Shown in pieces: positions 30,501-63,255 of a stretch of DNA of 64,000 nucleotides. The stretch comes from Saccostrea cucullata (lineage: Eukaryota): contig NW_026937967.1 in NCBI RefSeq assembly GCF_032062105.1, positions 372,001-436,000 on the forward strand. Reading direction: 5' to 3'. The notes below the pieces were generated by a model that saw nothing but the letters and a program-made list of their open reading frames with translations, ran no database searches and was not told the origin of the DNA. The stretch's first letter is position 1, and each line of letters begins with the position of its first letter. The translations under genes and the position numbers were made by a program.

Positions 30501-32412
30501 ATCTTTTGTACACTCACGATAAGTTGGAGTTGGGACAGTGTGATATAGATGCACCTTTCTCCTTAATCTTCTTCCTCTCTTTTTCAGACAAGTAAATTCC
30601 ATGACCTAGTACAGTCTGGATAAAACAAAAGTTATTTAATCTTCAGCTTGCAAAAATTAACATTAGCTAGTATTCAAGGCAACTTGCACTGGAACCTATA
30701 CAGAGAGAGGGAGAGAGAGAAAATCGTACATGCAATGCCATGTACCTTGCCATGGATGAGTCCCGCTTTGTCATACACATCCAGATAGTCCTCACAGTCT
30801 GGGAACATTTTACCTACTGATTCACACTCATCCTTTGTTTCCGATATATGCGTCTGTTAAAAAAAAACAACAACATTAATTGTAAATTCTTGATTTTGTT
30901 CCCAGCTTTTCTGTAAGTGACACACTGTGTTACTTACTTGCACATGTAAGTCCTTTTCGATGGCCAGAAGTCCTAAGGCATCCATTAACTGTGGACTGCA
31001 GCAGATTGCAAACCTGGGTGTAATAATTGGCAATACTCTTGCATACTGCAAAATATATGCGTGAAGTTTATTCTTGATGCAGGTAAAAACGTATCATTAA
31101 ATCAGTAAAATGATGCCCCCATTGTTAACTTACAACTTAAAGGATGCATTATTTTTTTATACCCCCCGCTTGAAAAGCGGGAGGGTATTTAGTAATCGTT
31201 AATTCCGTCCGTCTGTGCGTCTGTCCGTCCGTCCGTCTGTTACGCTTTGGGGTACCCTTCTCTTATCCGCAACTCCTCTCATACCAATGAAGGAAATTTA
31301 ATGAAACTTTCACAGAATCTTTATTACATATTGCCATTGTGCACCTCCTATTTTACTTTTTGATCTGACATATATTTTGAATTTTCCAGAGCAAACCATG
31401 GATACTGCCATTATATTCATATGGGAGGCGGGGGGTATTATTTAGTGAGCTCATTGCTCACAGTACGCTCATTGCTCACAGTACCTCTAGTACTCAATTT
31501 CATTAAGCAATGCATCCATTTCCATGTAATTACACAAGAATATCTGCTATATAGAATTGTAGAAGCTGTTAAAGAACAATTATTTTTGTAGTTTATAAAA
31601 CAAAACTTTGTGTAATATCAACCCCACTATACTTTATGTATAAAATGCAATGGTTAATTGCCTCAAACATATGCAATGTTATTTATCTGATACAAATGAC
31701 AAGGTTGTACATATCTACATCTACATTTAAGGAATCACTGTCTAGTTAGGAGGGTGTGTCAGGGCATCAACAATACATGTAGTGGGAAACATGGGATAAT
31801 TTGCATAACTGGCGAAGCCCGTTATGCTTAAATTATCCCATGTTTCCCACTATTGTTGATGTCCTTGACATACTCTCCTAACTAGACAGTGATTCCTTAT
31901 ATTTCCACTTCATTGTGAAATAAAATTGTAGATTTAGACTTTAAAAATGTAGATAATTAGATTTAAATCACATGATGACTTCCATGCCAATTTCAATATT
32001 CCTCGCCAACCGACGTCAAACACAAAGGCAGCCGCACGAGATTTACATGCATATTTGGCCTCTTAGCGTCAGACACAGAGACAGATGCGCACGAGAATTG
32101 CATGCGTATTAGGCCTCCTTACATGTAGCTCCCGATCTATCGACCTGCCTAATTTACATTCCGGCAGAATTATCAAGAAATAAACTACCCCTAACTTTCA
32201 AAGAGTTATCACAGAGAAAAAAATTAGAAATGGAAATATGTATGTATAAATACCAACTATGTTTACCTTTTTCTGGAGAACGTTATCAACAAATCTGAAA
32301 TTGATAAACAGTCATGATATGATCAGTTCAAAAGACGCATTAATATATCCAGACATTGTGGGTAAGAATTGCATTTTAATCTCAAATACCCCGGTATTTT
32401 AATGTCAATCAC

Positions 32413-41627: not shown

Positions 41628-44600
41628 TGAGGCCATTCAAAGTTTTAGAGCATGACCAAGATCGTGTATATAAATTAGAGGTTTGTAAATTTTATCCACC
41701 GAAACTTTTTCGGATGATAAGAATGTCTCAAAATAGAGAGTAATGATGTCTCAATACATGTATCTGCGACAACTTATATTTTGCTTGTACCTCATTTTTG
41801 GAACAGGATTATCAGCGGTAGGAATATTATAATAATGTTATCTTCTGATATTCACAAAAACTTTATTCATGTATCAGTATTAATATAAATAAAAATCAAT
41901 ACAATGTTTATTTGCAATCCTCCTATCATATAAATACAATTATTTCTTTAATTTCTAAGTACATTTTTAAAAATAAAATTCAAAATAGATATGAATATTT
42001 ATTATTCTATTTTATGAAAATCTTATGCTTACGTGTATATATTCGACAATATTTTGTCTTCATGCAAATAAGACTCATATAATTTAATCAGGTCATGAAT
42101 ATGAATATTAATTTTTCTTGTTAATTTCAGTTTCATGTCGATAAGAAAACAACAAAGTTTCCAATTCGAATCCTATCAGCGTCTACGGAGGCGTGGTGGG
42201 ATGACACATGGTATGAAGTGGAATTTGAAACCACGACGGAACACAAGACTAAGGTTGTCTGGTTCTTGCATCATATGGATAAAAAAATTCCGATAGTTTG
42301 TGAGTATGTTTTTTAAATGTAGTTTGAATCCTTACTTAATTTCTACCAATGCCTATTGGAGACAAGAACAATAATTATTCTTGATTGCTGCCTATTTAAA
42401 ATTAGCTGTCTATATTTATGCTTGTAATGCATGATTTCTTTTCCGGTCAAAATTCTACTCCAAAAAAGCTCCTTTTTGAATAATTGGTGTTAAGGATGAC
42501 GCGTTTACTAAGGTTTCAGAAGTCAAAAATTGTTCTAAATGGATGAAATAACAGTTTTAACCCAAAATCAATTTAAGAATTTAATATCTTATTTTTTAAG
42601 AAAATACACAGGAACAAAAGTCAACGAATGTATGGTGGCGCAGAGGAAATTCGGACTAAATTTCTAATTTTTCATTTTTGTCAAAATAAATTATTTCGTA
42701 CATTATCAATTACAATGTAAAAGTTAAATGTATTTCAAAACATCAGTTTGCAGATAATATGTGTATTAAAGCTCATGAATTATTTCAAATAATTGAATGC
42801 TATGAAATAAATAAATTCAAAAATATGAACAAATACCATTTCAGACAATATATCTCAATACTTCTGATCGTTGACCTCATATAATATTAATACCATTAGA
42901 AAAAGTAACTTGATGCTATAAATAATTTAGTGTTCTTATCATTCAGATTTTTATAATATTCTATCAAAAATGGAGAAAAGTAAATTATGACAGAGGAAAT
43001 TCGGACTGTAATAATTAATAAGTTTATCACCCAAACTCTAATCACTTATTTATATGAAGCAACGCTGTTCCGTTCCTATAATATTTCATTAGTTAAAGAG
43101 TTTTGTTGTTTGTAATATTTTGTGTGTAAAGGAAAAACCCGTCATAGTGTTTAAAATTGAATTATTTCCCCAGAAATACTGAGGGGCCACTAGATGAAAA
43201 GGAGGTCATTGACCTACTTATTTGAAATGAAAATTTAACAAAGGAATCACAGGCGTACAATGTGCAATAGGTTTGTTTTTTGTTCTTATCAGTAGAATTT
43301 TTTGTCATCTGAGTAAATGTATACCTTAATTGTTACAAATGTGCATGCTAGATGGTATGTGCATTTACCAGACCTGCTTTCATTATGTATCTACATTTTT
43401 TGGACGTCGACCAAGTAAAGAATCTGAAGTCCGTCCATTTCTAATTAATTACTTGTCTTTCCTGACAACTTAGGTGTATTATGCATCTTGGGATGTACCC
43501 AGTCTGACACACTACCGGTATGCTTTGTAAAAGTATTGTGCTTTCTCTAAACAGGTGGTTCAGATCTTACATATTTTGCAGTCATTACTTTCAGATGCAG
43601 TCAAAAGACCAATGTAAAAGAAAAGTAATCAAAACACTAAAGATTCCAAATTGTGTTGAATGTCTCTTTAATATGATATGAAAACAAGTATGCTACATGT
43701 ATAAAATGTTTTTATTTTCAGTTGGTGATCCCTCATTTTCCTCCTCCTTGTCCTATCAATGGCCTTACAAAAACCGACGTGTTGCCAGACTAAGGTCCAG
43801 AAAAGAAATGAGCACTCTTACCGAAACGATCCTAGAATTTGCAGTTACTCATCACCAGTCGACTGTAACTATTACTTTTGATGGTCTCAAGAATTTAAAT
43901 GCCACGACCACTCAAACTTTTGATGATTTTGAGGTATCTTCATTTTCATCTTTTATTTGTGCGTTTGTTTGTCTAGATCTTTGCACCAATTCGCCAATAT
44001 GCATGTCTGTCACAAAATACCTACACTTTTGTTACAACGCTTTCACATTTCATATATACATGTATATGAGCATAATCATCATCCCAAGTCATGGGTTTAT
44101 GATCATTACATATCGCAAGACGTTTCCGAATATATGTTGAATTGAATTTCATGAACTGAAGACTGTACTTGTCAGAGACTGTTACCTTGGCTGTAAGATT
44201 TTTACTTTTCACAAATTTTCATTTTTAGAAATTTACATTATCTGTGAGAAGATTTTTTCCCCCCATATTTACTATGATTTAGATCTTGTGACTTAATGTA
44301 TATTTGGATTTTTCTTAAGCCTTAATTTTGGCTGAGCATTTGCATAAGACTTTTAGAATATATATTTCTAATACGAGGTATAAGTTATTGACAAAACAAG
44401 TAGATGAAACAAGACTATCATCAATTTCCTTTTAAGTCACCTCGTAAGTTCTATGTTCGATATAATGACCTTGACAGCAAATGGAATTTATCATTAAGTC
44501 AACCCTCACTGGCGTTTTTCAAACTAGTCATTACCGGTATATACAAACTGAATTATCGACGGATTTTTCCGTCATTTTCCTATCCTGATATTACGTTTTA

Positions 44601-46388
44601 TGTATATGATAGACCATTTTATTGCACATTATCCAATAGAAATCCCAAAATGAAGGGCAAAAATTAAAGAATGTACTTTTATTGTTTTATGAATTCCTAA
44701 TAATGTTTCAGTAAATCATATCTTTATCATTTATACATTTTGTAAAACATAAACAAGAAACAGCATGAAATGACTGATAAAATAATATTTGTTGTAATCA
44801 AAAAGAATTTCCAACGCATGTTAATGCTCATTAAACAAAAGGAATGTTTTTATTCAGTGAAATTTAAGCCTTTCTTCAAAGGAAATTATATGTATGTATA
44901 TATAAAGTGAAGGTATTTAAATTTTCGTATTTTTTCAGTTTGACATTTCTGTGGTAAACTCAACCCAAACAAACGATACGACAAACATTAAGTTTGAAGC
45001 ATCGTATGAGGTATCAGGGAGTTCAAAGAATGTAAATGATAAATTAGTGTTGTAAGTGGGTATTATTAATATCAAATACTGTATGTTGTGTCTTTAAGTA
45101 AACAAACCAGTATATGTACATTGTAATTATAGTCTAAAAAAATGAATCTTTACGTTTCACACAAAGTAAATAGATGTTTGCTACAAAGAAAAAATTGTTT
45201 TTTAAATTAAACTCACTTTTATATTTTTAATTGGCCCATATAAAATAGATAATTAAAAAAAATCCCAGTGAACATATATTTTTAATATTTAATTTTCTTC
45301 AATAGTCTTCAATAATTAATAATACAGAATACTATTGAACACAAGTATATCATATTTAACATAACTTCTTTAAATACATGTAGATATACATATATCATAA
45401 CTTTTGCAAAAAAGAATAAAATTCTAAAAATTTAAATGTTCTTGAGCTGTCCACATGTAAACTATAAACTGTTACTTACCTGTAGGTCCAGATACATTGT
45501 GGAGGAAATCGACAACATTACAGGTCAGACTGGTGTAAAATTTTCAAGCAACGTCAGGAAAGTGCAGGACGATATACCGACTACATATTCCTTGGAATAC
45601 AACGACAACGCCCTCTTTCTTGATATAACAGAAATAAACATAGCTTTCGGTTGGTACTCTCGGTTTGAAATTTTGAAAAAAAAATGTTTAAAAACTAAGA
45701 AACCTACTGTAAAGAAATTTGAAGCCCCTCTTCTTCTTTATTTGATCAATAACCTATGTCGTTTTGTACTTATTTGTTTGATAATACAATTTGGAAGAAA
45801 ATTCTCAGAGCTAATTTGCAGAAGCTATGTTAATCTTTGTTGTCCAGCTCAATTTCACATAATCATTTTCTTTAAAAAACCAGCCCTCTGTCAGTTATCC
45901 TATATTACAGAATAAAAGTTCCATATCTAATTTAGTCACATGAAAGAAAAGGACAATTTTATTACTCTTAAAATAATACAAGTTCTATCGTTCTTGAGTG
46001 TCGTTTGAATTTTCACATAAATTTTATAATATTTATGTTTTACTTTATTAAAATAGAATCTGATGCTGTGATTAAGAAAATGGTTTTGCGATCTGAGTAC
46101 CATTTCTGGGAAGGGGATCCTCGACCGCCATTGAATGGTATAGGTCTGTTTGAGGAATATGATATTACCACTCACGATAAAAAGGCCATCAAAATCGTTC
46201 ACTGTGATGGTATTGGTGACGTCAACATTAGAATAGGTCTTCGTGGAAAGACTGGCGTTGCAGACATACCACCTGGACAGATTCCGGAAGTCCAGATTAA
46301 TTACGGGTACTTCCGGGAGGCGTTCGCCTTACTGAGGTATTACTCAGGAAAACTGGAGGACTATGAAGCCTATTGTTATCTTCAATAG
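41628..46388 (+). CDS. Uncharacterised multi-exon protein, probably secreted (exons 41628-41680, 42131-42299, 43722-43933, 44939-45051, 45486-45649, 46057-46388; possible upstream exon ending at 38680)
   Basis: Six exons with AG/GT boundaries and mutually compatible phases give an open frame ending YEAYCYLQ*. It has several N-glycosylation sequons (NAT, NST, NDT, NIT) and no family motif I recognise. The start codon is unresolved. Confidence 0.7.
42494..43325. mobile_element. Possible TTAA-flanked (Kolobok-like) non-autonomous element
   Basis: ttaa-gg..tttact and agtaaa..cc-ttaa; internal direct repeat cagaggaaattcggact at 42641 and 42991. The TIR match is weak. Confidence 0.35.
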
Positions 46389-47348: not shown

Positions 47349-48940
47349 ATGATCTCTTGTACAAGGCATTTTGTAATGAAGTGTGTCAGTCTTTTTATTA
47401 CCTTGGACTCTTTGATTGTTAAAGTTGAGACTCAAATTATTGTTCAAAACGGTAAGCTATATTTAAGTTATAATTTGGATATTTTATATTTTGGAATGAA
47501 AGAGAATAATTATTCTCGTAGCTATTTTAGTATATACCAATATTAAATGTTCATCCTAGAACAGCAAAATTAAAACGTTCACAAAACACAACTGCAATCA
47601 TTTGAGATTAGGTATCCCAATAGATGTATGAAATCTTTGCTATACATTAATGCATATTTATGTAAAGATACACATATCTTAAGTCTAAAACATCATTTTG
47701 ATAATTTATTTAATCAGGATAGTTTTACACCCATACAGTATACAGATAATGTTTAATACCTTTATGAACAATTTTCCTTAACAGTACGGTTCTATTTTAG
47801 TGGCCGCTAATTTACCAAGTAAGGTTTATCTGCCTGAAAACATGGAAAAGGGCTACACTGTATTCACTGTTAAAGAAAATATAAATCCGATAGACCCAGA
47901 CAATATACTTACTGTAACTCAATTTTATCCAGCGGCAACCAAATCTGTTTTCCAATACAACGTAACAAGTAAGTTAGACGTATTTCATTATTCTTTTGTT
48001 TATAATCATAAATGTTCTTTTGATCGCTCTATTCGTAAAAAAAGTTTCTTTGTGTTTATTTCGTCCAGTTCATGATCTATTTTTGTCGTTTAAGCAGCTA
48101 AAAAAACTTGTTTTTTTCTCTTAGTCTTTGGATTAATTCATCCTCAAATTTATTTTTACTGTCATTTTAAATCATATAATATATCATATAAACGGAATTT
48201 TTAAAAAAGTATAAAAAGTTATTCATGTATATGTAGCAATGTAAAAAGGTCGAGTACATGTACTTTATAAATAATTTTTCTTATACATTTTAAAACATAA
48301 AATTAAAAACATGTATCAGTGTTGTAGGTAAAGAAGTTTCTGTGATTAATGGGAGTTTGCTGAATTTCGAGAGTCTCAACAAGTCCTACCTGATTCTTTT
48401 CCAAGAAAGAAATGATCCTTCCAAAGTATACCCATTATTGATAGAAATAATTGACGTACCCGAACCCTCAGATTTCAAGCTGGAAAAGACAACAGATAAT
48501 GGCTGCTGTAATGACGTCAGAAGATTGTTGTGGATGGTGCCCGTTTCCTCTGCATTAGAGTTTATCTTGATAATGCTTGGAATCACAATTTTATTTTGCT
48601 GGTAGGTCGAAGATACAGTACAATAAGTATCTTTATTTTCATGTACTATTAATTACAATTTCCCAAAGGGCAAGAACACTTAATAAAAAGTTGACTTTTT
48701 CAAATTCTTAAGTCAACTTTATATTTGTAAATAATTAGAAAATGTATATACTAGAATACCATTAGTTATATTTATTTACCGTAAAGTGGTTATTTTAGTA
48801 TTTATATCTTCCACCTTTGAAAATGAATGATATTAACGAACACAATATTTATAAAAGCATATAATACATTATTTATTTATTTTATTTACAGTGTACCAAA
48901 GAAAGGAAAACAAACAATAGTAAAACCATTTGGAAAGTAA
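47349..48940 (+). CDS. Single-cadherin-domain type-I membrane protein, copy 1, 197 aa (exons 47349-47451, 47801-47968, 48328-48601, 48892-48940)
   Basis: Cadherin-like hallmarks VYLPEN..G.TVF, LNFES..SY and IEIIDVPEP, followed by GCCNDVRR, a TM helix LLWMVPVSSALEFILIMLGITILFCC and the tail VPKKGKQTIVKPFGK*. Exon sizes (103/168/274/49) are identical to copy 2. Confidence 0.85.
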
Positions 48941-51900
48941 GGAGAATGTGAAGACATACCATGTCCACTTTTTTTCTGAATTATCCGGAATCAAAGCATA
49001 TTTTGTAAATTTTGATAAATATTTTTATTACATATATAATGCTTTCGTTGTTTTCAATGATATAAAATCGTTTGTGCTAAGTTTGCATAAGAATCCATGA
49101 AGTAATATAATAATCTGTTGTATATTTGTGTCATACAAACTTCTGAGTGGAAGTCCGACAGGGATTCATGCATCATACATGATATAGCGATAGTTCAAGG
49201 TCAAACGTCACTGTAACGTTATAGACTAGTACGCTGAAGTCTAATGTAAGAAAGTATTACTAGTATTTAAAATGGTTAGACTCTGTGCATGTCGAAAGGA
49301 ATCATGGACTAGCACTACTAAATTGACGTACCATTCATAATGGTCTAGCCATATTAAACTATATATTGTAAAATCATATATTTCCACGGGGAAAGTTTTC
49401 CAGATTTGAGAAAATATTCTTGATTTGTAGGTATTTGATTTCGAAATGAGTATTGAGTAGTAATGCGTGTTAAATTTTACATTTCATGGTTTCATCTCTC
49501 CATACTTCATAAATAACGAATATTATTCCCAACGCACATTTGTGATTTCACATTATGCGTTTTAACACTATGCTGTTAGCATATAACTTACAATACATTT
49601 AGAATCTATAAGTCTGCTAGAACACAAAAAGAGTGTGGGACCCATGATTCATTTGGCCTTGTTCTCGAAGGACTTGTTACAACTTTTTGTCAAAATTTTG
49701 TTCAGAATAAATCTCAAACAAATTCCCACATATTTTAAAATTATTCCTTGGTTTCAATTTTTAAATCAACAAAAAACTTTCAAAAAAGTAAACAGCAACA
49801 GAGCGACATCTTTTATATCTGCATCCCCGATTCAGTTAAAACTTAAAAGATAAGGGATTCACATCTGAAGTTAGGTCATATATGCACTTGCCCTGTCGTC
49901 CAGTTTTTTAAATTATTATTATATTAAAGTTATTATATAGTGAAATATGTTAAATTAAAATACTGTAACAACAACTTATTTTCAATAGTCAATTGTTCAT
50001 AAGCGAGTCAAAAATTTAACAAATTGTTGATATCACACTATATAGAGCCTATAATCTTATTGAATAACTATAAACGCGCGAACTTTTCGCGAGCATATCG
50101 TCTCGCGTTATTACGCGAAAATGAAATAAATAAAAAAAAAAAAGGATTTACAAAAAACGGGGCTTATCTCAATGTCAAAAATTAAAATAACAAATACCAT
50201 TTCAACTCATTTAATAAAGATTGTATTGAGCCACTCAATAACATATCGTCTGCATGTATACTTTATCTTTCTTTGATAAACATACCAAGCATTTTTTTTA
50301 CACTAGAAAAATGCAAGATGCAAATGACGAAACTATACTGAATCAAAATAAAGTCAAAAAAATTTAGAAAATTGAGAAAACTCTATTCTTGAGTATATTC
50401 ATTTTCTTGTTGCAGCTTTTAAATACTGTATAATTGTTTGAATTGGTCGCATATCTGTAAACCTGTGAAACAGTTGTGCATTTTACTGGTTTTCCTCAAG
50501 GAATAAAATGACTTTAGGTTAATAGCATAATCAATTTTATCTTGAAAATAACTTTATGCAGTAAACAACCAACCACGAAACGCATGCGTTTGAGAAATAA
50601 ATAAAAACAATTTAAAAACCTACATCATGTTCATACATAGCTGCGCCATTTCTCGGTTTTCTCTAATATTAAAAAATCCTTAAGATCACAGCAAAACTTG
50701 ACTTTTTCCTCTTAGCTATAAACAGTAAGGGGTATTCTATTACAAATCAAAAGCTAAACTATAAAAAAATAATTTTTAAATGCATCAACCTATCTCTAAA
50801 TCAATTTAGACATTTAATGTTAAGCAATAAATATTTGGAAAATTTTACTGAGTATATGCCACTAGGTTATTTGCCGGGTATTTATATCTTCTTTCTGTTT
50901 GACACACAAAAAAAATAAATTTAACATATTAATTATTTCCCTGCCCATCGCTGTTTTTTTTTAGAAAGAATACAGAACCACACCTGAATTCTGCTGTAAA
51001 TATGTCATTTTTATGAGACAAAGGTAACACAGTCATGAACATTTTGAGACTCCGTGTGTATCTACACTTTGTACTTATCTCTCAAAACTTAAATGACAAT
51101 AGTTCAAAAACAACTTTACCATCCGGTGAAGAATAAAGAGGCAACAAACAAAAGACCAAAATCCAACTATATTAGAATTTATTGAGCATCTGCTACATAT
51201 ACCTGAGTACAAATGTATGTCTTGACAAGTGGTCGGAAGAAGGTTTAACGTGAAACGGGTCTAAAGAGCTAAATCTTTAGTCTTTCTTTTCATTTGTTTC
51301 ACGTATGGATACCGAGTTTTCAATGATTCTATGTATCGATGTCATTCACAAATACGTTTCATTTTTAATCAATTAATATAAATAAACCATCATATTATTA
51401 TTATTAAATTTGGTAGAAATATTTCATTAATTAAAATCATCCCAAAAATATGATGATGTACATATTTATTTCAAAGTCGTTGAAAGTAAAAAAAAAAAAA
51501 AGTATAAATAGTTTGGCATTAAAATTTCATTCAGCTATTAAAGATATTTACCTTTTTAAGATATCTATAGTCAAGATTAACGGTGTTTTGTTTTTTTTGT
51601 TTGTTTTTTTTTTTTTGTTTTTTTTTTTGTTTTTTTTTTTGTAGATTTGGCTATTGCAGCTTGACATGAGTGCTGTCGAAATCGTTCTTACAATTCTTTT
51701 TCCGCTCTTATTTTCAGTTTGATCCACGTATCTTTAGCTTACTAAACAAACGTTTTATGAAATCTTACTTTTTCGTAATTTTTATAAATTGTTTATTTTG
51801 AGCTGTTCATTTATTTTTTTAGTATTTGTTTTCATATATTATGATCTCTTTATTTAAAATATTTTTTTGTTCGTGTAGGTCTTGATTACGAATTCACTAA

Positions 51901-52419
51901 AAATAAGTGTCGAGGAAAAACATCATAATGATATCTGTATGTTCTTATTAAAACATATACATGTAAGAAGTATTTTTTGACTTCTTATTGGAAGTTTAGA
52001 GAAATCACCGATTGGTGATCGAATACGTTATTAAACACATATTTTTATATTTTCACAAATGGTACCACCAGGTATATAAATTACAAGACGGTACCAGTTG
52101 TTTACAAACATTTATTGTGCAGTTTAAATTGTTATTTGTTAAATTAAAAGACAGATAAAATATTTTTAAGGACAGATGAACATTAGTAGATGTAGATTTA
52201 AAAAAATTCTTTTGCGTAGCTGCAAATTATCAAAACTGCGTCTATAATTTTTAACTAATCACATTTAAAAGGAAAACATAAGTTCGTTAAAAAGTGTTTT
52301 AATAGTAAAATAAACATAGGGAAATCAACACCTTTATTACAAACCAAATAACGCAAATAAAAAGATGCATGCATTCAGGCATATATGCATATTAACTATA
52401 TTAATATTGAAACATATAG

Positions 52420-52625
52420 AGATGATAAAAAGTATTCAAGATCAAAAGTCCATATAACAATACAATATAGGAGTAGAAGAAAGACGGACCTCCAAAACAT
52501 CAGACGTGGGATCAGGTGCTGTGGAGGAATGCGTATCCCCTGTCGACCGGTCACGCCCACTATATGCTCCTTGTCATGATCGTGAAATAACGGGAAAATC
52601 CGTAAACAATTCAGTGTATAAATAA
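52420..52625 (-). mobile_element. Penelope-like 3' tail fragment
   Basis: cggacctccaaaacatcagacgtgggatcaggtgc..atcccctgtcgaccggtcacgccc. Confidence 0.8.
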
Positions 52626-53318
52626 CAATCTTATTCGTGGTCAGATTACAATATTTTGAAAACGTTATTTAATTTAATTCAAATTTATATCTATTTTGAA
52701 TTCCAAATTTCAATATTTACATTTGCAAATGTTTTCCTTTATATAACACTACTGAAAGCAAGCGTATTAATAACTGTATAAATACAGGTACGGGGTCAAG
52801 AGGTCATAGATGTGCGTATGGATAAACGTTCGATGTAATTTCTCAGTGACGTCATAAAGGGTCGACGCGCGTTCAGTAAAACTCAAAAAATGATACCTTA
52901 TTTCTTCAATATAACCAATAAACACGTATAATATGTATAATACTCAATTTTCACAAAGGTATTAGGTCTTAGATCAAATTTTCGAATTATTTTTAAGTTG
53001 AAATAAAAAAAAAATTAAGCACTGTATTAAAGGGTTACGACAAGGAAGTCATTTAAAGTATTTAATTTAATAAAGCAATAAAAATAAATTAAATTGAAAT
53101 CTTTAAAAGAATCAGGTTACAAGCATTTTCAGATCTGGTTGAAGTTTTTGTACTTAAAATGAACATCAACGAGGAAATTGATTTTAATGTGTCTAAAATC
53201 CATTTTATAATCAGATTTTTTGTCAATTTATTAAGAAGTTTATACTATATAAGTAGAGCCATAGTGTGCAACATCTTATAATTTTTCAAAGAGAGTAGAA
53301 GGTCCCATTGCAGTAAAA

Positions 53319-56193
53319 ATGATAAGTATTTTTAAAGAGTATTCTTTTGTAAAACGCATGACTATTTCCTTCGTTATGACATATCTTGTAGCAGCAATCG
53401 GTGCACAAATTTCTGGTACAGGTTTGTATATTTATTTGTTTGTCAGTAAATATATTTAATTTAACATTGTTCTAGAATATAATAATGTTGTGAATTCTGA
53501 AATATATTTAAAAGAAATACAAGTATTTAATACATTTCGTGTTCACTCGTATACGATAGCATATTCAAATATACTGTAAATGTATTATATTTAGGGTGTA
53601 CATGTACGATATTTGGCGGAAATTGATTTTGGAATAAGTTAGCGTAGATTTGATTTAGCGCATTTCTCCATATTCTTTATGTGTATATGTGCAAAACAAT
53701 TAGCTTTGTATTTAATATAGCAGTTGCTGCGTTCCGCCATAGCCGCTTAATAGAATACACTGCCAAACGTAATACGTTTACAGTATTAAACGATATTCAA
53801 GTTAATTAATATATGTTATGGTAAGAAGGGTAAATATTAAATGTTGGTGAGAAAAAGAAAACAAATATTAAGTCACTACCATAATATATATGTAGAAATT
53901 ATGTATAAAATTTGATTTTTTTTTAAAATTAATAATACGTTTATTCCTTATTTTCTAGACCCACCTAATTTACCACACAAAGTATTCTTACCTGAGAACT
54001 CGGAAACGGGACAAGTTGTGTACAAAATTAACGACATAATTGATTCTGAGAACCCGAGGAATAAACTTCAAGAATATGAATTTTACCCAGCAGATACCAG
54101 AAATATTTTCAAATACAACATTACAAGTAAGCACAATGCAACGAATAATTAATATGATAAATAAACATATATATTTATAATAATGCTTTAGCACTGTAAG
54201 GACGTCACTGGTTCAGATTTTTTTCTTAGCTATACAAGAACCCTATTTTCGATTCATGTGATGTTTTTTAGGCCTCTTTATTCTCATTTCTACGATATTA
54301 ACAGCCGTGTAGAAACTTCAAGAGAACTGTTCAACAATATATTCGAGGAGTGGTGTAAAAGCAGATTTTGATACTAGAAACTTCAATAGGACTTTTGGGA
54401 CATTTGAAATCACAATCATAGAAACTTTTCAAATTTATATACAACTATTCACTACGATGAATTAAAGTGAAGCGTGCCTGACATCATTCACAGCTGCTTT
54501 TTCATCAAAAATGAAACTCATAAATTTTCTTACCTTGTCATTGGTCATTTGCAAATTTAATTTGTTAAAAAGCATTCTGATAGTACACAAAACTACTATG
54601 AAGTTGAATTTATAAAGATTTTCGACATTCTGATAGACAATATCTATGTGTTTTAGGAGACCAGGTCTTCCAACAATCTACTGAAATTCCCATGGGTACG
54701 AATTAGGCTCCGTTTATAGCAGATCTATTTTTGTATCCGTATCAAGCTTAATTTCTTCAAATCTTTCACATGAGAAAAAGAGAACACTTGCAGTGACATT
54801 TGACACGACATTTAGATATATCTATGATATATCATATTGCAAATTAACAATGATTAATTCCATTCTTATGTCGATACGATATATCCCGGTGAACTTTAAA
54901 CAAAAGATATTCAGAGACTGATACATCTGTTTCATATTTAGATATATTTTCTCTAGAAAGAGACGTCAATGCTACTCCAACATCAATACTTAATGATAAC
55001 CGTGATTTTGAATAGTCAACTTCCTTATCTTATGCAGTAATTGCAATATACTATCATCACCTGCATACGGGACTTTCATCTCTCAGTTGAGCATACTCTA
55101 CGTATTAACAATTTCTAAAGCAAAATAATTCTTTGATAAACAAATTTCTGATACGAAAATATCAGTAGTCTCGTTTGAAGTCAAAGTTTCGTAAATTATA
55201 TGGTAGTTACAATGATCTTGTCAGTGAATACAATTTATCATTAAGTTATAGTCTGACTGACGTGTTTCATACACTGAATTGTTCTTTTTTTTCGCTGTTT
55301 CTCGATTATGAACAGGAGCACACAGCGGATTTGACCGGTTGGCAGGCAGTAATTACTCCTCTCCGACACCTGGTGCAACATCTGATGTTTTGGAGGTCCA
55401 TATAGCTTGGCTTCGATTTTTTTTATTGTTATAATGGCTTTTTGAAATTGAATGATGTACGTTATCTCCATATACCAGGTATTTCATCAAATATAGTATG
55501 TTACTGTCCCCTGTAGTTTTATGTAAGTTTGAACCGTTTAATCACCCGTCTTGTTCTTCCGTATATCAACCCCTTTAATGCACTTAGATTATAGATTCTT
55601 TTCATTTTGGCTTATTCACCTATTGAATAGTATGAAGAAGACTTATACCTATAACAATAATAATTTACAAATATTTATAGCTAAAGAAGTCTCCGTGATA
55701 AATGGAAGTTTGCTGAAATCTGAAGGTCTTCATAAGTCATACCTGATTCTTTTCCGAGAAATATACAATCATTCCAAAGTCTATCCTTTAGTGATAGAAA
55801 TACTCGATGTAACTGAAGCAACAGATTTCAAACAGGGAATGTCCATATATAATGGTTGTTGTGATGACGTCAGAAGATTGTTCTGGATTGTGCCTGTTTC
55901 TTCTGCATTGGAATTTATCTTGTTAATTCTTGGATTCATAATATTACTAACCTGGTATGTTTAATGAGAAATCAGAATTTTTCTTAATTGAAACAATAAA
56001 AATCTTCTTTATAGCGTTGTTATTGATTGATTTAATAGTTTAATTTATAAATTTAGTAATTTATACATTTATTTATTTTTTACCTTTCATTTTTATTGAT
56101 ATTTTAATTATATATTTATTTATTAATTTACTTACTTTTTGTAGTGTCCTGCAGAAAGGAAAACAGAAGATGATAACACCTCTTGAGAAATAA
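53319..56193 (+). CDS. Single-cadherin-domain type-I membrane protein, copy 2, 197 aa (exons 53319-53421, 53959-54126, 55681-55954, 56145-56193)
   Basis: Paralogue of copy 1: MIS.. leader, NLPHKVFLPENSETGQVV, KEVSVINGSLL, GCCDDVRR, TM LFWIVPVSSALEFILLILGFIILLTC and tail VLQKGKQKMITPLEK*. Same exon sizes and phases. Confidence 0.85.
53574..53783. mobile_element. TA-CTGTA..TACAG-TA MITE in intron 1 of cadherin-like copy 2
   Basis: tactgtaaatgtatta / taatacgtttacagta. Confidence 0.7.
54180..55480 (+). mobile_element. Longest degenerate Penelope-like copy, in intron 2 of cadherin-like copy 2
   Basis: Remnants FSNLYTTIH (DFSTLYTTI-type), IPMGTN.AP.IADLFLY, FRYIYD and SSPAYG..ISQL, plus the shared 3' tail. 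Confidence 0.85.
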
Positions 56194-56824
56194 GATGTGT
56201 ACATACATCATGTGTATATTGTGAGTTCTTTGAATGAAGACGAAAACTATTTACAATTTCGATACTTCATCTGTTTCATGTGTCCATGTATTTTTCTCAA
56301 TCCAGGATTTGAGATTAGTTTTATCAGATTGCGCTATTCTTTGTGAATAATATTATCTATAGTAGATACATGCACGTACATGTAGCGGAGGTTAGTTTAG
56401 ATAGTCCACTGTTTTTCAAAAGTCTTCAATCTATTTTTTTTAAAGCAATTTGATTTATAAAATTTTGAATATATTTCAAAATGTTTAAATCATAATATTT
56501 TCAGATTATTTGGCACGAACGAATGAGTAACTCTGGGATATGATAAGTAGCATAACTTGGAATAATTTTTTGTCATATATTATTTAATGGGATCTGAACA
56601 TTTTTCTGAAAATATATTCCCCATGCATTGTGCAAAACAAAAAATGTAAATGTAATGCAATTATAATACAAATTAATCACGTAGTTAAACATAAAGAAAT
56701 ATGTTATATTATAAGAATAGTGCATATAGGTATCTATAGAGTCTGACATATTTTCAGAATTGTACCTTATTGAATGAAAGTAATAAGAAATGAGTATATG
56801 TTTAACTGTTAAAACATGTCATTA

Positions 56825-57017
56825 CTGTATACAGGATTATTTTCGCCCCGTGTTATTTTCGCCCTTTCACATCTGAAAACAAGTTTGCCCCGTTTTAAAT
56901 TCGCCCCAAAAGATTTTTCTTTAAGATATTATACAGTTTACTTTGAATTCGCCCCGTTTAAAATTCGCCCACGCCAGACTAGGACGAACGGGGCGGCGAA
57001 AATTTCACTGTATACAG
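56825..57017. mobile_element. TA-CTGTA MITE with internal ttcgccc repeats
   Basis: tactgtatacagg..ttttcgcc / ggcgaaaatttcactgtatacagta. Confidence 0.8.
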
Positions 57018-57811
57018 TATTTATTCAAAAGTTTCTATATTCACTTTCTTTAACTTGAGACAGCTGATTAAGCAATGATAAATCTCTTATTTTCTCTTCA
57101 TCAGATATGTTGATTATATATTTACATGTATTTCAAATGACTAAAAAAAAATAGTGTTTTTATTTCAAACATGTGAATTATTTTGAGCAAATACAACATT
57201 TTAAATATTTCCATCGCTCTCCTTTTTTACACAAAATCACCATTTGTATTTTCTTTTTCTTAAAATTTTAGAATTTTATAGGAAAAAAGATGTTTTTTAA
57301 AAGGTTATCACCCTTTCAACTGCTTTCATTGAACGTCTTTAAACATGTAATTCGTTAGAAGGGATCTTAAACCAGCGTTACATTTATATAAAATAAATTA
57401 GAAAAGCTATCGGAATTTTATTGATTTTTATCGCCTAACCGATAACCACATGCTCGACGACATTTGGAAAGAGGACCCAACAGTAGGTAAAACTTTGATA
57501 TAGAAAGATATAAGGTATTGGGCATATGCATAAAACGCTTTGAAAACAACTTAAAATGATCCGAAAGCTCTCGGAATGGACTACTCAAAAATTATATTAG
57601 ACAAAGCTTTAGGAGAGTCAGACAGTCAGAAGGTGGCTTGAGAAGTTTTATGTATTAGCAATAAAGAAGTTAAAGGAAAGTTCACAATAAAAGTATGACA
57701 AAAAAAAGGCAAGTACAGGCAAGTATCCTAGATTCTGGGTGTCGTAAATCTGAACGAAGGCTGAGACAACCGGTTCTAATTTATCTGTAGGATCCTAGGC
57801 ATTGTAAGAAG

Positions 57812-58402
57812 GATATGGAGATAACGAACAGTATTCAATATCAAATTCCATAAAACAATACAAAATAATAGCAGACCAAACACGGACCTCTGAAACATCA
57901 GAGATGGGATCAGGTGCCATGGAGGAGTGAGCATCCCTTGCTGACCGGTCACACCCTGCCGTATGCTCCTTGTCATGATCGGGAAAAACGGAAAAATCCG
58001 TCGTCAATTCAGTTTTCAAATAATGGACAAACAATTAGTATGAAAAACGTCAGCCAGCATTTGACTCAATGATAAATTGTATTTGCTGACAAGGTCATTG
58101 CATTGACCATAGAACTTACGAAATGATGATTTTAAACAAGACAGCTGATATTCTTGTCTCATCAACTTACTTGTCAATAATTTACCTCGTTTTAGAAATT
58201 GTTCATACGTAGAGCATGCTCTTTAGTATCAAATCAACTGAGATATATACACACCGTATGCAGGTGCTGAAGGTATGTTGCTGCATAAATAAGGGAATTT
58301 GACGATAGAAAAGTTAAAGTCATCACGTTTATCATATAGCTTGGTTGTTAGATTACCATGAACGTCTTTTTCAAGTAAAATATCCAAGTATGAAACAGAA
58401 GT
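57812..58402 (-). mobile_element. 5'-truncated Penelope-like copy
   Basis: Reverse-complement match to 1205-1760 across ~590 bp. Confidence 0.88.
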
Positions 58403-59435
58403 AGTGCCTTAACCAGTCCCTATCTTTAGAAAACGAGAAAATAATAATTGATTTTAGTACTGTGTGATTTATCGTCAGATGGAGCTGTCTTAATTATTCA
58501 TTTCATTAGCTCAGACAGAGTACATGTAGGAGGTATACCTATGTAAAGTTACCTTGTAAGAACTTGATCATACGTTTTACATAGGAAATATCTTTAAAAA
58601 TATTTTCTTGTGTAACTTAACCATTATAAGTCATGTAATACAGAAGCTTCCGTAGGTACATGTGTATTGTAGAATAAAATGTGTTTAAATTATGACCCCC
58701 AGGGACTTTTGGACACAATAGAGGATCATAGTTGTACATAAGAATATATACGAATCCTATGAATAAAATATTCTGCTTAAGAACAGCAAAGCCATGATTA
58801 ATCATGTTATTAAAGAAACATTCTATGGTATAGTAAATTCAAATTTGTTTAAATTCAGGTTTGACAGGGTGGGGTCACAATTAATTATCAGAATTATACA
58901 AAGAAATGTATGAGAGGGAAATATTTAAAATTCATTCTACTCAAGAACTATTGACATAAGTATCCTGGGATACATACATTTAGTTTTGTACTCTTTCCCC
59001 TGGTAAACTTTTCATTCCTGAATTGATTTCTGCTATTTCAATGCCAATGAGCTTAGGTCTCTTGTAAGAGTAATTCTTCTTTGTCCTTAGTGTTTTCAAG
59101 CTATGGTTACAGGTATAAATAACAACGACGTATATTCTTGATAATATAGTATTTTCAAGATCAGAGTACAAATTCTTAAATACAGTGCATCTTTCCGTAA
59201 CATTGGGCATACGAAGGGTTTCCTCAATAAAAGAAATTTTGGGATATGGGTTTTAAAATTAATAATTGCAGCCATAAACATTGTTAGGTACCTTTTTTAT
59301 CGTTTGTCCAATTTACACGTTTATTGAAGGTAAATATTTGTTATACTTGAATAAAGTATAATCCAACTCATCATCCAAGGTTAGGTACATTATTCCGTAT
59401 TCTGCTTCAAGAAACTAGACAGAGCCTTTCCTCTT

Positions 59436-59712
59436 GGAGTCAAAATGCTGACTGACGTTTTTCAAAACCAATTGTTAGACCATTTTACACTGTGACACAA
59501 ATTGTCGATAGACCGGATTTTCCCGTCAATTTCCGATCATGACAAAGAACACACAGCGCGCGGTTATGACCGGTCGGCAGGGGATGCTCACTACTCCATG
59601 ACAACTGATCCCACCTCTGATGTTTTGCATGTCTATGTTTACTCCGCTTCAATTGCATTGCTTTCGTGGATTTTTGAGCTTGAATACTGTATGTTATCTC
59701 CATATATTTCAT
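59436..59712 (+). mobile_element. Penelope-like 3' fragment
   Basis: gagtcaaaatgctgactgacg..tgaccggtcggcaggggatgctcac..ctgatcccacctctgatgtttt. Confidence 0.82.
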
Positions 59713-61000
59713 TGTAATTATCACATAAAAAATGGAGGGGGGGGGGGAGTATTTAACAATTACCAATGAAATCATTCCATTGCCAACCCTAATTTTTCGT
59801 CATTTTCACTGAACCACTTATTGTCATTCACTTCAAATACTGGTATGTGTTCAAGCTTTTTTTAACCAAGACGAGACAAAAATGACATCAGTTCAGAAAA
59901 ATCTCAGCAGGGGTATATTGTTATACATAAATAATCATGTCGCACTTGTATTGCCTGATCAGTGAAACATTAAAATTACCTATTTGTTGCATAATTAAAG
60001 AGACGGTTTCCACTCCTTATCTGAACTCTCAATTACTTAGCAATAAAAGTACAACATGAGATCAGATAAAGTTCAGAGGGCCTTCACAAAACACGAAAAT
60101 AGCATGTAACTAATCATTTCTCCTTGCTTTCACCTTTCATTTTGAATACTCGATATAAAAAGGAACAAGTAACAATTTTTTAACCTTTTTTCTACTTTAT
60201 GAATTAAAAAAAATTACATCCAATGAAGTAAAATTTCTTTAAGAATAAAGTTTTATTTCAAAGTTATTATCATTTACCAAAAAAATTTTATTAGATAACT
60301 TTAAAGCACTGCCCTTTAGCATTTTTTCTACACTTCCATGTGTAAATATATGACACTGCATACTATATACATGATATTAGTAACCGACAAAAGTCGTTAC
60401 ATGCATATTGCATTGTCATTCATTTCTCGGGAAAACACGTATAGAAGAAAACATTTTAGATGCTCCATTATGATCGTGTTCATTTAAAGCACCAGTTTGA
60501 TTATAAATACCATTTTTAAAAGTTATTATTATTTATCATATCATTTTAACAAAATATTTTACTTGAAATTGATATATGTGATTGTTATTTAATTTTGAGG
60601 AAACTTAAGTATTTAGAAAAATTATTTAAGATGCTTAATTCTGAAAATAAAAATTTAAAGCACTATATTTTAGCTTTATTAAACATGCAAATTTTTTAAA
60701 AGGACACTTTGCATAAATATTTATTGCTTAGAAACAACTAATCATGACTTGCAAGTTTCCGATGATTCCAATAATTGTCTTTGATACTCATACATCAAAA
60801 AGTATGTACTTTAATTTCCACAAAAAGAGTCTTTAGTGTGAAAGATGCATGGACTTTACAGCTAAATTTGCACGTTTAATGTTCCAATCAAGCACAGTAA
60901 TTGAAGTAATAACAGTAAAAAATCTACATATATATCATGAAATGCAGGTACACTTATAAGTCCGAGAGATGTAGGAGAAGAAACTGATTTTTACCCGAAT

Positions 61001-61589
61001 ATGTATTCAAGATATATCTCGGAGAATTCATTTGTGATTGGAATATTTTTAATTTTAACATATGCTGTTGGTAAGTTTATTATCAATCAATAGTAAAAAT
61101 CAGCGGTAAACAGTATTTTTGTTTTTCCAACTCTGTAAGTGATGTTGAGAAACTAAACAGACTGAATTTTGTTATTCTGGACAAAATAATAATTTCGTGA
61201 GGTGAATTTCAAACAAAAGTGACAGCTTTTAATGTTAACAATGTTTTATATGGAATTTAAACAGGCCCAATATCGTGTACTTCTGATTGTTGTGATGATG
61301 TCAGAACTATAATATGGCTAACTCCAGTTTGCTCTCTATTGGAACTTTTTGCCATGCTGATTTGTTGTGTCATTATAATAATTTGGTACGTATTTTTTGA
61401 AATAATATCTTAAATATATTTAAATATAAAATTTACCTCTTTAGTGGAATGAAGCAAATATTTTATCATGGATTAGGTAAAAAAAAAAAGAGTGTTGTAT
61501 TACATAAATTTGTTGATTTACTTATTTTTTTCAGCTTTGGCAAAAAATTTAATCGAACAGCAATCAATGCTTCAACCTCCGAGAAATGA
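61001..61589 (+). CDS. 81-aa membrane microprotein, paralogue lacking the cadherin ectodomain (exons 61001-61070, 61265-61385, 61535-61589)
   Basis: MYSRYISENSFVIGIFLILTYAV/GPISCTSDCCDDVRTIIWLTPVCSLLELFAMLICCVIIII/CFGKKFNRTAINASTSEK*. It has the same CCxDVR-W-P-E TM motif and the same phase-2 intron inside the post-TM Cys codon as copies 1 and 2. Splice sites are canonical. Confidence 0.8.
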
Positions 61590-63185
61590 CAACTACAAAG
61601 TGTTTACTTAGAATCAGATTTTATCTATTAACATTTCTTATTCGAAGGATGAATGCATTCAATAGACGTCAGTCACATATTAAATGACTGAAAGAGTTTG
61701 TTTGGAATATGTTTGGAAGCTGTATTTTTTCTGTCACAAGTAGAAGCAGGGCTTTCTAAATATTTGCATTTTTAAAAAAAAATACATGCCTAGTTCAATC
61801 TTTTTTGTTACACCTTGAAAAATGTCATCTTTTACATTTTCAAAACTTTCTAACGCCATAGATTTGAATTAATATGTACATGTTAAAACTTGTATGATAC
61901 ATGTAAAAAACTTAAATTATATTGTATTTTAATGGATGGAGACCAAAAACATTTGGAAAACATTAATCTTTTGTCTTTCAAGTCCTAACTAAATCTCTAT
62001 ATCTGGGACAATTTTCATTCGTAGTACTTCAGTTATAAATTTCTGGCAATTTTCAACATTTGCAACTGGGTGCACTTTCTAATTCTACTGAAAAGTGATT
62101 TTATAATGAGAAATTAAATAATTCTCGCAGATATTTGTCACACGAGTTGGTTTACAGTGCATCTATCAAACTAGGATGTGTATATACAAGCACACACTTA
62201 AATATTTTGACCAATATCATATCTTTGTTTTATTTTTTAAACTTAATTCAACAAATACTGGTGCTTGGAATTAAAACTTTAACTTTCATCTATTTCTAGA
62301 TGTTCCGCAGTGTATGTCAATACTGAAAATGTAAAACCTCGTACATTTTTTGATGTAGCAAGATCACAATATAGCCATTAACCGTAGATGTATTTTGTAT
62401 TATTATTATTTAGATCATTTGTTGTGGAATAAAAAAGTGTTTGAAGTGTTAATGTTGTGCATGAATAATTCTTTAGCAGTAAAGAACATATCATAAGCAG
62501 TAACTAAAATGGATTACATATGATGTAAGCGACTAAATTGATATCATATAAGATCGTAACTATAACCATTAAGACTAAATCTTATTATTATCACAGAGTT
62601 AGTAAAATACAAATTCATTGGACATTTTATCGCTTCCTAATTGACATGTACTCAATAAACCAACCTATCCAGTCAATGGCGGATCCAAATGATAGCTATT
62701 TATCAACAGTTATAAAATCGAATGAGTGTTCTGTCTTGAAACTTATGAAACGTATTTACGAGAGTGAACCTACATGTTTTTCAAAACATTAAAAACGACT
62801 TGGCAGAGGCTGTTTAAATGCTTTTATTTCTAAGATTTGATGGGTGATAACCTTATTTTCTCGTTATGAAAGCACCCACTTTTGGTTTAACGGTATATAT
62901 AAAAAATAAATAAATTTTGAGCTTGACTCTCCTTATTTGTATTTTCAATTAATTCGTTCAATATAATGTATCGATAAAAGACCTGAAATACGTATTTATC
63001 CGGATGCATAAAGTTTTTATCCGTTGTTTAATGGAAAATAAACGAGGTGCACAAGAATTTTAACGGTTTGATTATTGATGTTGTCGTAAATTATATAAGT
63101 ATACATGCATGTTTTCAATATTACATTTAAAATGCTCCATCTCTTTTAAACTCATATTTGAGAGAGAAGGGGTAAGATAACAAAT

Positions 63186-63255
63186 ATGTATTTTTGTTTT
63201 TCTATGGCAATTTTAATATCCTTTGGAATATTATTTCTTTCAACGTCAGGGAATG
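63186..63255 (+). CDS. Probable signal-peptide exon of a further family member (rest beyond the window)
   Basis: MYFCFSMAILISFGILFLSTSGN followed by a phase-1 GTAAGT donor. It is 70 nt, the same size and phase as exon 1 of the 61001 gene, and also starts with MY. Confidence 0.55.

Follow-up and report, generated by a model that had tools for sequence, protein, structure and literature searches.

What kind of membrane protein is encoded by a row of small genes which share one transmembrane (TM) segment and carry either a single cadherin (EC) domain or none? The question is raised by a 64,000-nucleotide stretch of the Saccostrea cucullata genome (contig NW_026937967.1, positions 372,001 to 436,000 of the forward strand), hereafter called the window. 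It holds a cluster of four tandem, same-strand spliced genes, A, B, C and D, the first three of which are complete within the window. A, B and D each have one degenerate EC domain and C has none. The family is apparently an undescribed, oyster-restricted variant of the cadherin kind, neither a classical cadherin nor an adaptor that carries the tyrosine-based activation motif of immunoreceptors (ITAM). A first-pass annotation, made from the letters alone, had proposed three intact spliced genes, and this was borne out: the spliced models of A (197 residues), B (184 residues) and C (81 residues) have canonical GT-AG junctions and open frames, and the model of B is letter for letter that of RefSeq LOC134249187. 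As had been read, a phase-2 intron interrupts the codon of the last Cys in each of the three. A likely fourth first exon does open a complete single-EC gene, D, of 214 residues, with exons 2-4 located 4-5 kb beyond the window end, but the motif of D is CCDHYR and not CCxDVR. The 5' end of gene A is the least certain, because its RefSeq model (LOC134249172, 112 residues) covers exons 3 and 4 alone and exon 1 encodes a weak signal peptide. Genome-wide searches of this 1.17-Gb genome found no family copies outside the cluster, whose count is a lower bound.

Gene C has no EC domain. An intact and syntenic orthologue lies in S. echinata (L019:7987-8619), where it is absent from the called genes. 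Its exons of 70, 121 and 55 nucleotides have the same frame and encode the same number of residues, and the three exons contain no insertion or deletion relative to C, as compared to 19 gap openings in the two introns. From the CC pair through the TM helix (the membrane module), C and its orthologue differ by 9-10 synonymous and 3 non-synonymous changes, giving a ratio of non-synonymous to synonymous substitution rates (dN/dS) of 0.06-0.08 with p ≤ 1e-4. Unlike the module, the signal peptide varies freely. Constraint is also seen in D and between A and B, with dN/dS of 0.38-0.41. By this comparison C is a real gene, and the strong conservation of its membrane anchor in rock oysters suggests that it has a job of its own.

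A second ectodomain-less gene was found in Crassostrea angulata. It is an unannotated three-exon gene of 83 residues (L020:22592-23777), located 6 kb after a one-EC gene, and its exons encode the signal peptide, the TM segment and the tail. In its promoter and signal exon it shares 78% identity with the local one-EC paralogue, and the acceptor AG aligns with coding bases of that paralogue's stalk. In trees built from nucleotide alignments of 141 and 201 columns, unrooted and with all rows included, the C. angulata stub grouped with Crassostrea paralogues and C grouped with D and the Ostrea edulis gene. Constraining the two stubs to group together was rejected by the approximately unbiased (AU) test (p-AU 0.0005 and 0.0004). 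Judged from these trees, ectodomain-less genes apparently arose twice, the one in Crassostrea probably in parallel. No EC-exon relics were found in the first introns of either stub.

The same comparisons bear on the possibility that the cluster is birth-and-death debris, in which the one-EC genes would be ordinary truncated cadherins of this lineage, playing weak roles, and the stubs would be shortened duplicates without distinct function. Signs of decay occur in Crassostrea: the tail of the C. angulata stub is frameshifted and its constraint is weak, some copies have lost the Cys and Glu of the module, and one C. angulata copy (LOC128192763, L021:9381-11702) would meet a stop at the junction of exons 1 and 2 if spliced like its paralogue. 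The RefSeq model of this copy begins downstream and has no signal peptide, and it is a possible pseudogene. However, C has kept three exons, frame and length across a dS of about 0.5 with its module under strong constraint, and A/B and D are constrained too. We regard debris as an improbable account of the family, and for C it is unlikely.

A gene in the same locus bears on the origin of the membrane module. It is a cadherin with three EC repeats, located some 35 kb downstream of D and equally oriented (C20104:474223-476373, +; L009:223-2373). Its EC1 matches the family EC profile with 22.4 bits and has the same mid-EC1 phase-1 intron, and its EC2 matches PF00028 with E 3e-6. At its membrane end a Cys, a Trp, a Pro and a Cys stand in the family register, a phase-2 intron follows 24 codons after the Trp, and the last exon is 55 nucleotides long as in C, D and the O. 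edulis gene. The module thus looks like an inherited cadherin C-terminus, since the 3-EC gene shares EC1, the register, two intron positions and the last-exon length with the family. The sequence score of its TM segment and tail is modest (12 bits; 19 of 2000 segment shuffles scored as high), and it is the intron match that carries this argument. The 3-EC gene has one stalk Cys, no intramembrane Glu and an intact linker (DEND); its signal exon was not found. The stalk CC and the Glu are present only on the family side. The first-pass annotation had suggested that the module could belong to an undescribed receptor/partner system; a plainer origin is indicated by its alignment with the C-terminal end of this cadherin.

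We consider it probable that the family was derived from a multi-repeat cadherin via deletions. In the simplest history, whose direction we infer from the sequences, EC2 and EC3 were lost and the second Cys and the Glu were gained afterwards. Stepwise loss of EC repeats from three to one to none would yield small type I membrane proteins. Deletion of EC2-EC3 would join the second half of EC1 to the stalk/TM exon, and later deletions would remove EC1, with a splice acceptor recruited from old stalk sequence. Descent from a larger gene differs from the proposal that a single long cadherin of the conventional type uses these segments as alternative exons, to which the common strand and tandem order might point and which the first-pass annotation had named as an outcome that would refute its reading. 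This can hardly be the case: a signal exon, a TM exon and a stop of its own are present in every unit, and separate single-EC genes are modelled by RefSeq in O. edulis, S. cucullata, S. echinata and two species of Crassostrea. A second multi-EC cadherin, on another contig (C21028, 443600-451300, +; L032-L033), has the half-EC exon pattern in common with the family, but its TM end is different and the module is absent.

We examined whether the ectodomains of A, B and D are cadherin domains. Neither the exons nor the full-length database proteins gave a cadherin match in Pfam, PF00028 remaining below its gathering score, and the EC assignment rests on fold comparison of predicted models rather than on Pfam score. 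The AlphaFold model of the O. edulis relative best matched EC3-4 of protocadherin-19 with Z 11.8 and a root-mean-square deviation (rmsd) of 2.6 over 99 residues, and Foldseek gave E 8e-7 for it. The best match of the gene B model had Z 10.1 and rmsd 2.6 over 95 residues. The mean predicted local distance difference test (pLDDT) score given for these AlphaFold models is 71, and the top 50 fold matches of the two were all cadherin EC repeats. There is also a weak sequence match of an A-type gene to Pcdha7 (E 9e-4). According to the predicted models, the A-type genes carry an EC fold. Thus the claim of one cadherin-like domain in two of the complete genes and none in the third holds by predicted fold and stays below the Pfam threshold. 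The final two strands of the EC are joined by a loop which in several relatives (P0003, P0006, P0012, P0016 and P0017) contains a furin-like basic site (RRKR or similar); this site is missing from A, B and D.

Non-classical cadherins (PF00028; protocadherin-19, cadherin-23) share with the family the EC beta-sandwich (Z 10-12), the PE and LDFE-like motifs, a signal peptide and one TM helix, and the family probably descends from a 3-EC cadherin of this kind in the same locus. The difference lies in the number of repeats and in the linker. The cadherin superfamily has been delimited by at least two consecutive EC repeats (PMC10734073); A, B, D and all relatives have one, and C has none. The tails of 10-17 residues leave no room for the catenin-binding domain of classical cadherins. 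The three-calcium inter-repeat site draws residues from two adjacent EC repeats, namely xEx, DxE and DxNDN of one and DxD and xDx of the next (PMC5120219). The one-EC genes retain the PE (PEN) and LDFE-like motifs, the DxNDN linker has become DVxE in all of them, and the following repeat is absent. Because the site takes residues from two adjacent repeats, a lone EC should be unable to form it.

The membrane module is the sole part common to all members and is retained in orthologues, in line with the first-pass proposal that it is the conserved unit. The pattern CC-x-DVR-x3-W occurs exactly three times in the window (48504, 55857 and 61288) and in none of 100 shuffles. The motif built on it is not invariant, however. 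Among 16 family sequences, with positions counted from the conserved Trp (W), the first Cys is present in 14, the second Cys in 13, the Glu at +9 in 14 and the Arg in 9. Along the helix, Cys at W+5 was found in 11/16 and Ala at +12 in 8/16; Cys, Ser or Gly at +16 and Ile at +19 are in all 16, and Cys at +23 is in all complete models. The resulting 4-3-4-3-4 spacing suggests one packing face. Both stubs retain the CC pair and Cys-x3-Glu, and the latter predates the loss of the head because one-EC relatives also carry it. Complete tails contain no Tyr.

These features do not fit a signalling adaptor of the DAP12/FcR-gamma type, with C as the adaptor and A, B and D as matching receptors, which had been the suggested analogy. 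C resembles CD3-zeta, FcR-gamma, DAP12 and DAP10 in overall size, in its minimal Cys-containing ectodomain and in its single helix with an acidic residue. Adaptor-receptor assembly follows a 2:1 acid-to-base rule (bioRxiv 10.1101/2020.12.22.424036). The family fails these tests because its tails lack Tyr, hence ITAM and YxxM, and its members lack the basic TM residue that is usual in such receptors. The supposed receptors carry Glu, as C does, in place of Lys/Arg, and some Crassostrea copies are without it. Moreover, C has Glu where the adaptors have Asp, no homology was detectable, and the family is of cadherin ancestry. A true adaptor is refuted on the defining features that were tested, and we consider it very unlikely. 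A looser version supposes that C forms a disulphide-linked homodimer like that of zeta or FcR-gamma. Its pair of Glu residues would bind the basic TM residue of some unrelated receptor and couple to it without an ITAM. The tiny Cys-rich ectodomain accords with this, as does the Cys which in both stubs precedes the acid by one turn of the helix, the design of the zeta-zeta dimer, in which a disulphide lies one turn above the acid pair (PMC13107469). On the other side, there is no Tyr motif, the fourth residue after the acid is neither Thr nor Ser (DxxxT/S), the cluster holds no basic-TM partner, and Cys-x3-Glu is also found in the one-EC relatives. The search for a partner covered the paralogues only, and a basic residue is dispensable for the assembly of some Fc receptors. 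We give this homodimer only a small chance.

The main rival is that the family members are ancillary subunits of an unrelated multi-pass protein (a pump, transporter or channel), like basigin or neuroplastin for PMCA. Basigin carries a TM Glu, and the basigin/neuroplastin helix likewise has a conserved polar residue. The family helix with its Pro and Glu would dock on the client, and C would do so headless, with no need to pair with its paralogues. The general build is similar: a small, single beta-sandwich ectodomain, one helix with conserved Trp, Pro and Glu, and a short tail without signalling motif, and in C the strong constraint is confined to the membrane segment. Single-pass immunoglobulin (Ig) proteins of the neuroplastin type are obligatory subunits of pumps (PMC6127144). 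However, these are Ig folds, whereas the top 50 fold matches of the oyster proteins are cadherins, and no sequence similarity was found. The module matched no solved chain among PDB sequences (E ≤ 10) and nothing in the Atlas, and a language-model search with it gave weak matches at best, 0.78 or lower. Fast duplication, turnover and restriction to one lineage, the oysters, are a poor fit for a housekeeping chaperone. An ancillary role, whether for the whole family or for a headless C, appears unlikely.

As the whole best explanation we propose, at roughly even odds, a cadherin-derived cluster of putative covalent membrane oligomers in which C is a headless subunit tuning its paralogues. Family members would associate laterally within the membrane into small oligomers or dimers, covalently linked, via the stalk cysteines and the helix face (W+5 Cys, +9 Glu, +12 Ala, +16 Cys/Ser/Gly, +19 Ile and +23 Cys), and the EC would serve as a surface binding head. 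C is proposed as a non-signalling stub subunit because it keeps the assembly face while the head and any signalling motif are absent; it may co-assemble with one-EC paralogues and tune valency, folding or surface delivery. Since the inter-repeat site for three calcium ions should be beyond the reach of a lone EC, the members are not expected to act as classical calcium-dependent adhesion cadherins, and the mechanism of side-by-side oligomers in place of such adhesion is one we hold tentatively, at somewhat less than even odds. A more far-reaching version has only an outside chance of being right: the cadherin anchor would have turned into a modular assembly unit converging on zeta/FcR-gamma, and stubs which arose twice would join one-EC cadherins or unrelated receptors.

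Several results weigh against this proposal. A, B and D all lack the W+5 Cys, so a W+5 disulphide cannot link C to any of them, and some Crassostrea copies have neither the Cys nor the Glu. Small and polar residues do not recur along the helix with significant periodicity (p 0.08), nor is the module of C significantly more constrained than that of D (p 0.08). The tree is short and unrooted (141-201 nucleotides), and stubs of one origin could look separate through gene conversion. The C. angulata stub is under weak constraint (dN/dS 0.4-0.6) and its last exon has a one-base shift relative to its relatives, trimming the tail; for these two reasons it may be decaying. Finally, our searches returned no database protein for C or for D.

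Truncated-paralogue microproteins retain only the oligomerisation domain of their larger relatives. C is likewise a small headless duplicate that keeps an assembly segment and adjoins full-length relatives, but its kept segment is a membrane helix, and any dominant-negative action would be putative here. Because relatives with three ECs (one gene), one EC (three genes) and no EC (one gene) stand side by side, their exon structure shows how a cadherin was reduced to a membrane microprotein. The 81-residue product is strongly selected yet missing from the database proteins found, and the similar Crassostrea stub seems to have arisen separately. If the stub assembles with receptors, this would be an invertebrate case of receptor assembly based on membrane helices with a traceable origin; short of that proof, the cluster is a tidy lineage-specific family in a farmed animal group.

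Relatives were sought by exhaustive profile search. The motif module is kept in orthologues, as the first-pass reading required, and the named full-length relatives are from oysters only (S. echinata, O. edulis, C. angulata and C. gigas). Additional contig fragments show the same layout. Beyond the family, the search returned solely long multi-repeat proteins matching the EC half, and a search of metagenomes for related loci gave no match. No paper naming the loci or such a family was found in our literature library, itself partial, which agrees with the claim that the family is undescribed. The gene order in S. echinata is B, C, D. In all three genera the cluster is flanked by the last exon of an unrelated neighbour gene (O. 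edulis, L018:22179-22571; C. angulata, L021:21207-21527). Exons of this neighbour lie at 42125-46388 (+) of the window and have no Pfam match, and an old C. gigas model, K1QP73, fuses the neighbour gene to a mini-cadherin, which is probably an annotation artefact. The exons of the cluster are listed in Table 1.

Table 1. Exons of genes A to D, in window coordinates
Feature	Position	Strand	Remarks
Gene A exon 1, probable signal peptide (weak)	47349..47451	+	spliced model; not in RefSeq model
Gene A exon 2, EC first half (NLP...PEN), 168 nucleotides, phase 1-1	47801..47968	+	
Gene A exon 3, EC second half, stalk CC and TM helix with Glu	48328..48601	+	RefSeq-matched
Gene A exon 4, juxtamembrane Cys (split codon), basic 15-residue tail and stop	48892..48940	+	RefSeq-matched
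Gene B exon 1, signal peptide	53358..53421	+	identical to LOC134249187
Gene B exon 2, EC first half	53959..54126	+	LOC134249187, predicted fold
Gene B exon 3, EC second half, stalk CC and TM helix	55681..55954	+	LOC134249187, predicted fold
Gene B exon 4, Cys, basic tail and stop	56145..56193	+	LOC134249187
Gene C exon 1, signal peptide, 70 nucleotides	61001..61070	+	length and frame same in S. echinata
Gene C exon 2, short stalk with three Cys and TM helix with Cys-x3-Glu, no EC	61265..61385	+	
Gene C exon 3, Cys, basic 17-residue tail without Tyr and stop, 55 nucleotides	61535..61589	+	
Gene D exon 1, signal peptide	63186..63255	+	S. echinata orthologue LOC133195618
Gene D exons 2-4	67669-67836, 68375-68726, 68950-69004	+	window-equivalent positions (contig C20104, offset 372000)

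A dispersed repeat family, with copies 67-81% identical and in both orientations, is found at 942-1770, 9427-9753, 44364-44580, 52408-52625, 54661-55474, 57808-58403 and 59437-59721 of the window. Copies lie inside and between the cluster genes, and the repeat is probably a non-autonomous transposon. Palindromic (self-complementary) stretches were seen at 4197-4827 and 31725-31902. An open reading frame of 503 residues at 18414-19925 (+) matches RING, B-box and filamin repeat and encodes a TRIM-type protein. Large exons of a long coiled-coil protein with no significant family match are located at 2913-4055 and 12955-15051 (-). Farther along the contig, at about C20104 485000-490800 (+), there are two pairs of similar short exons, which resemble tandem FAM167-type genes.

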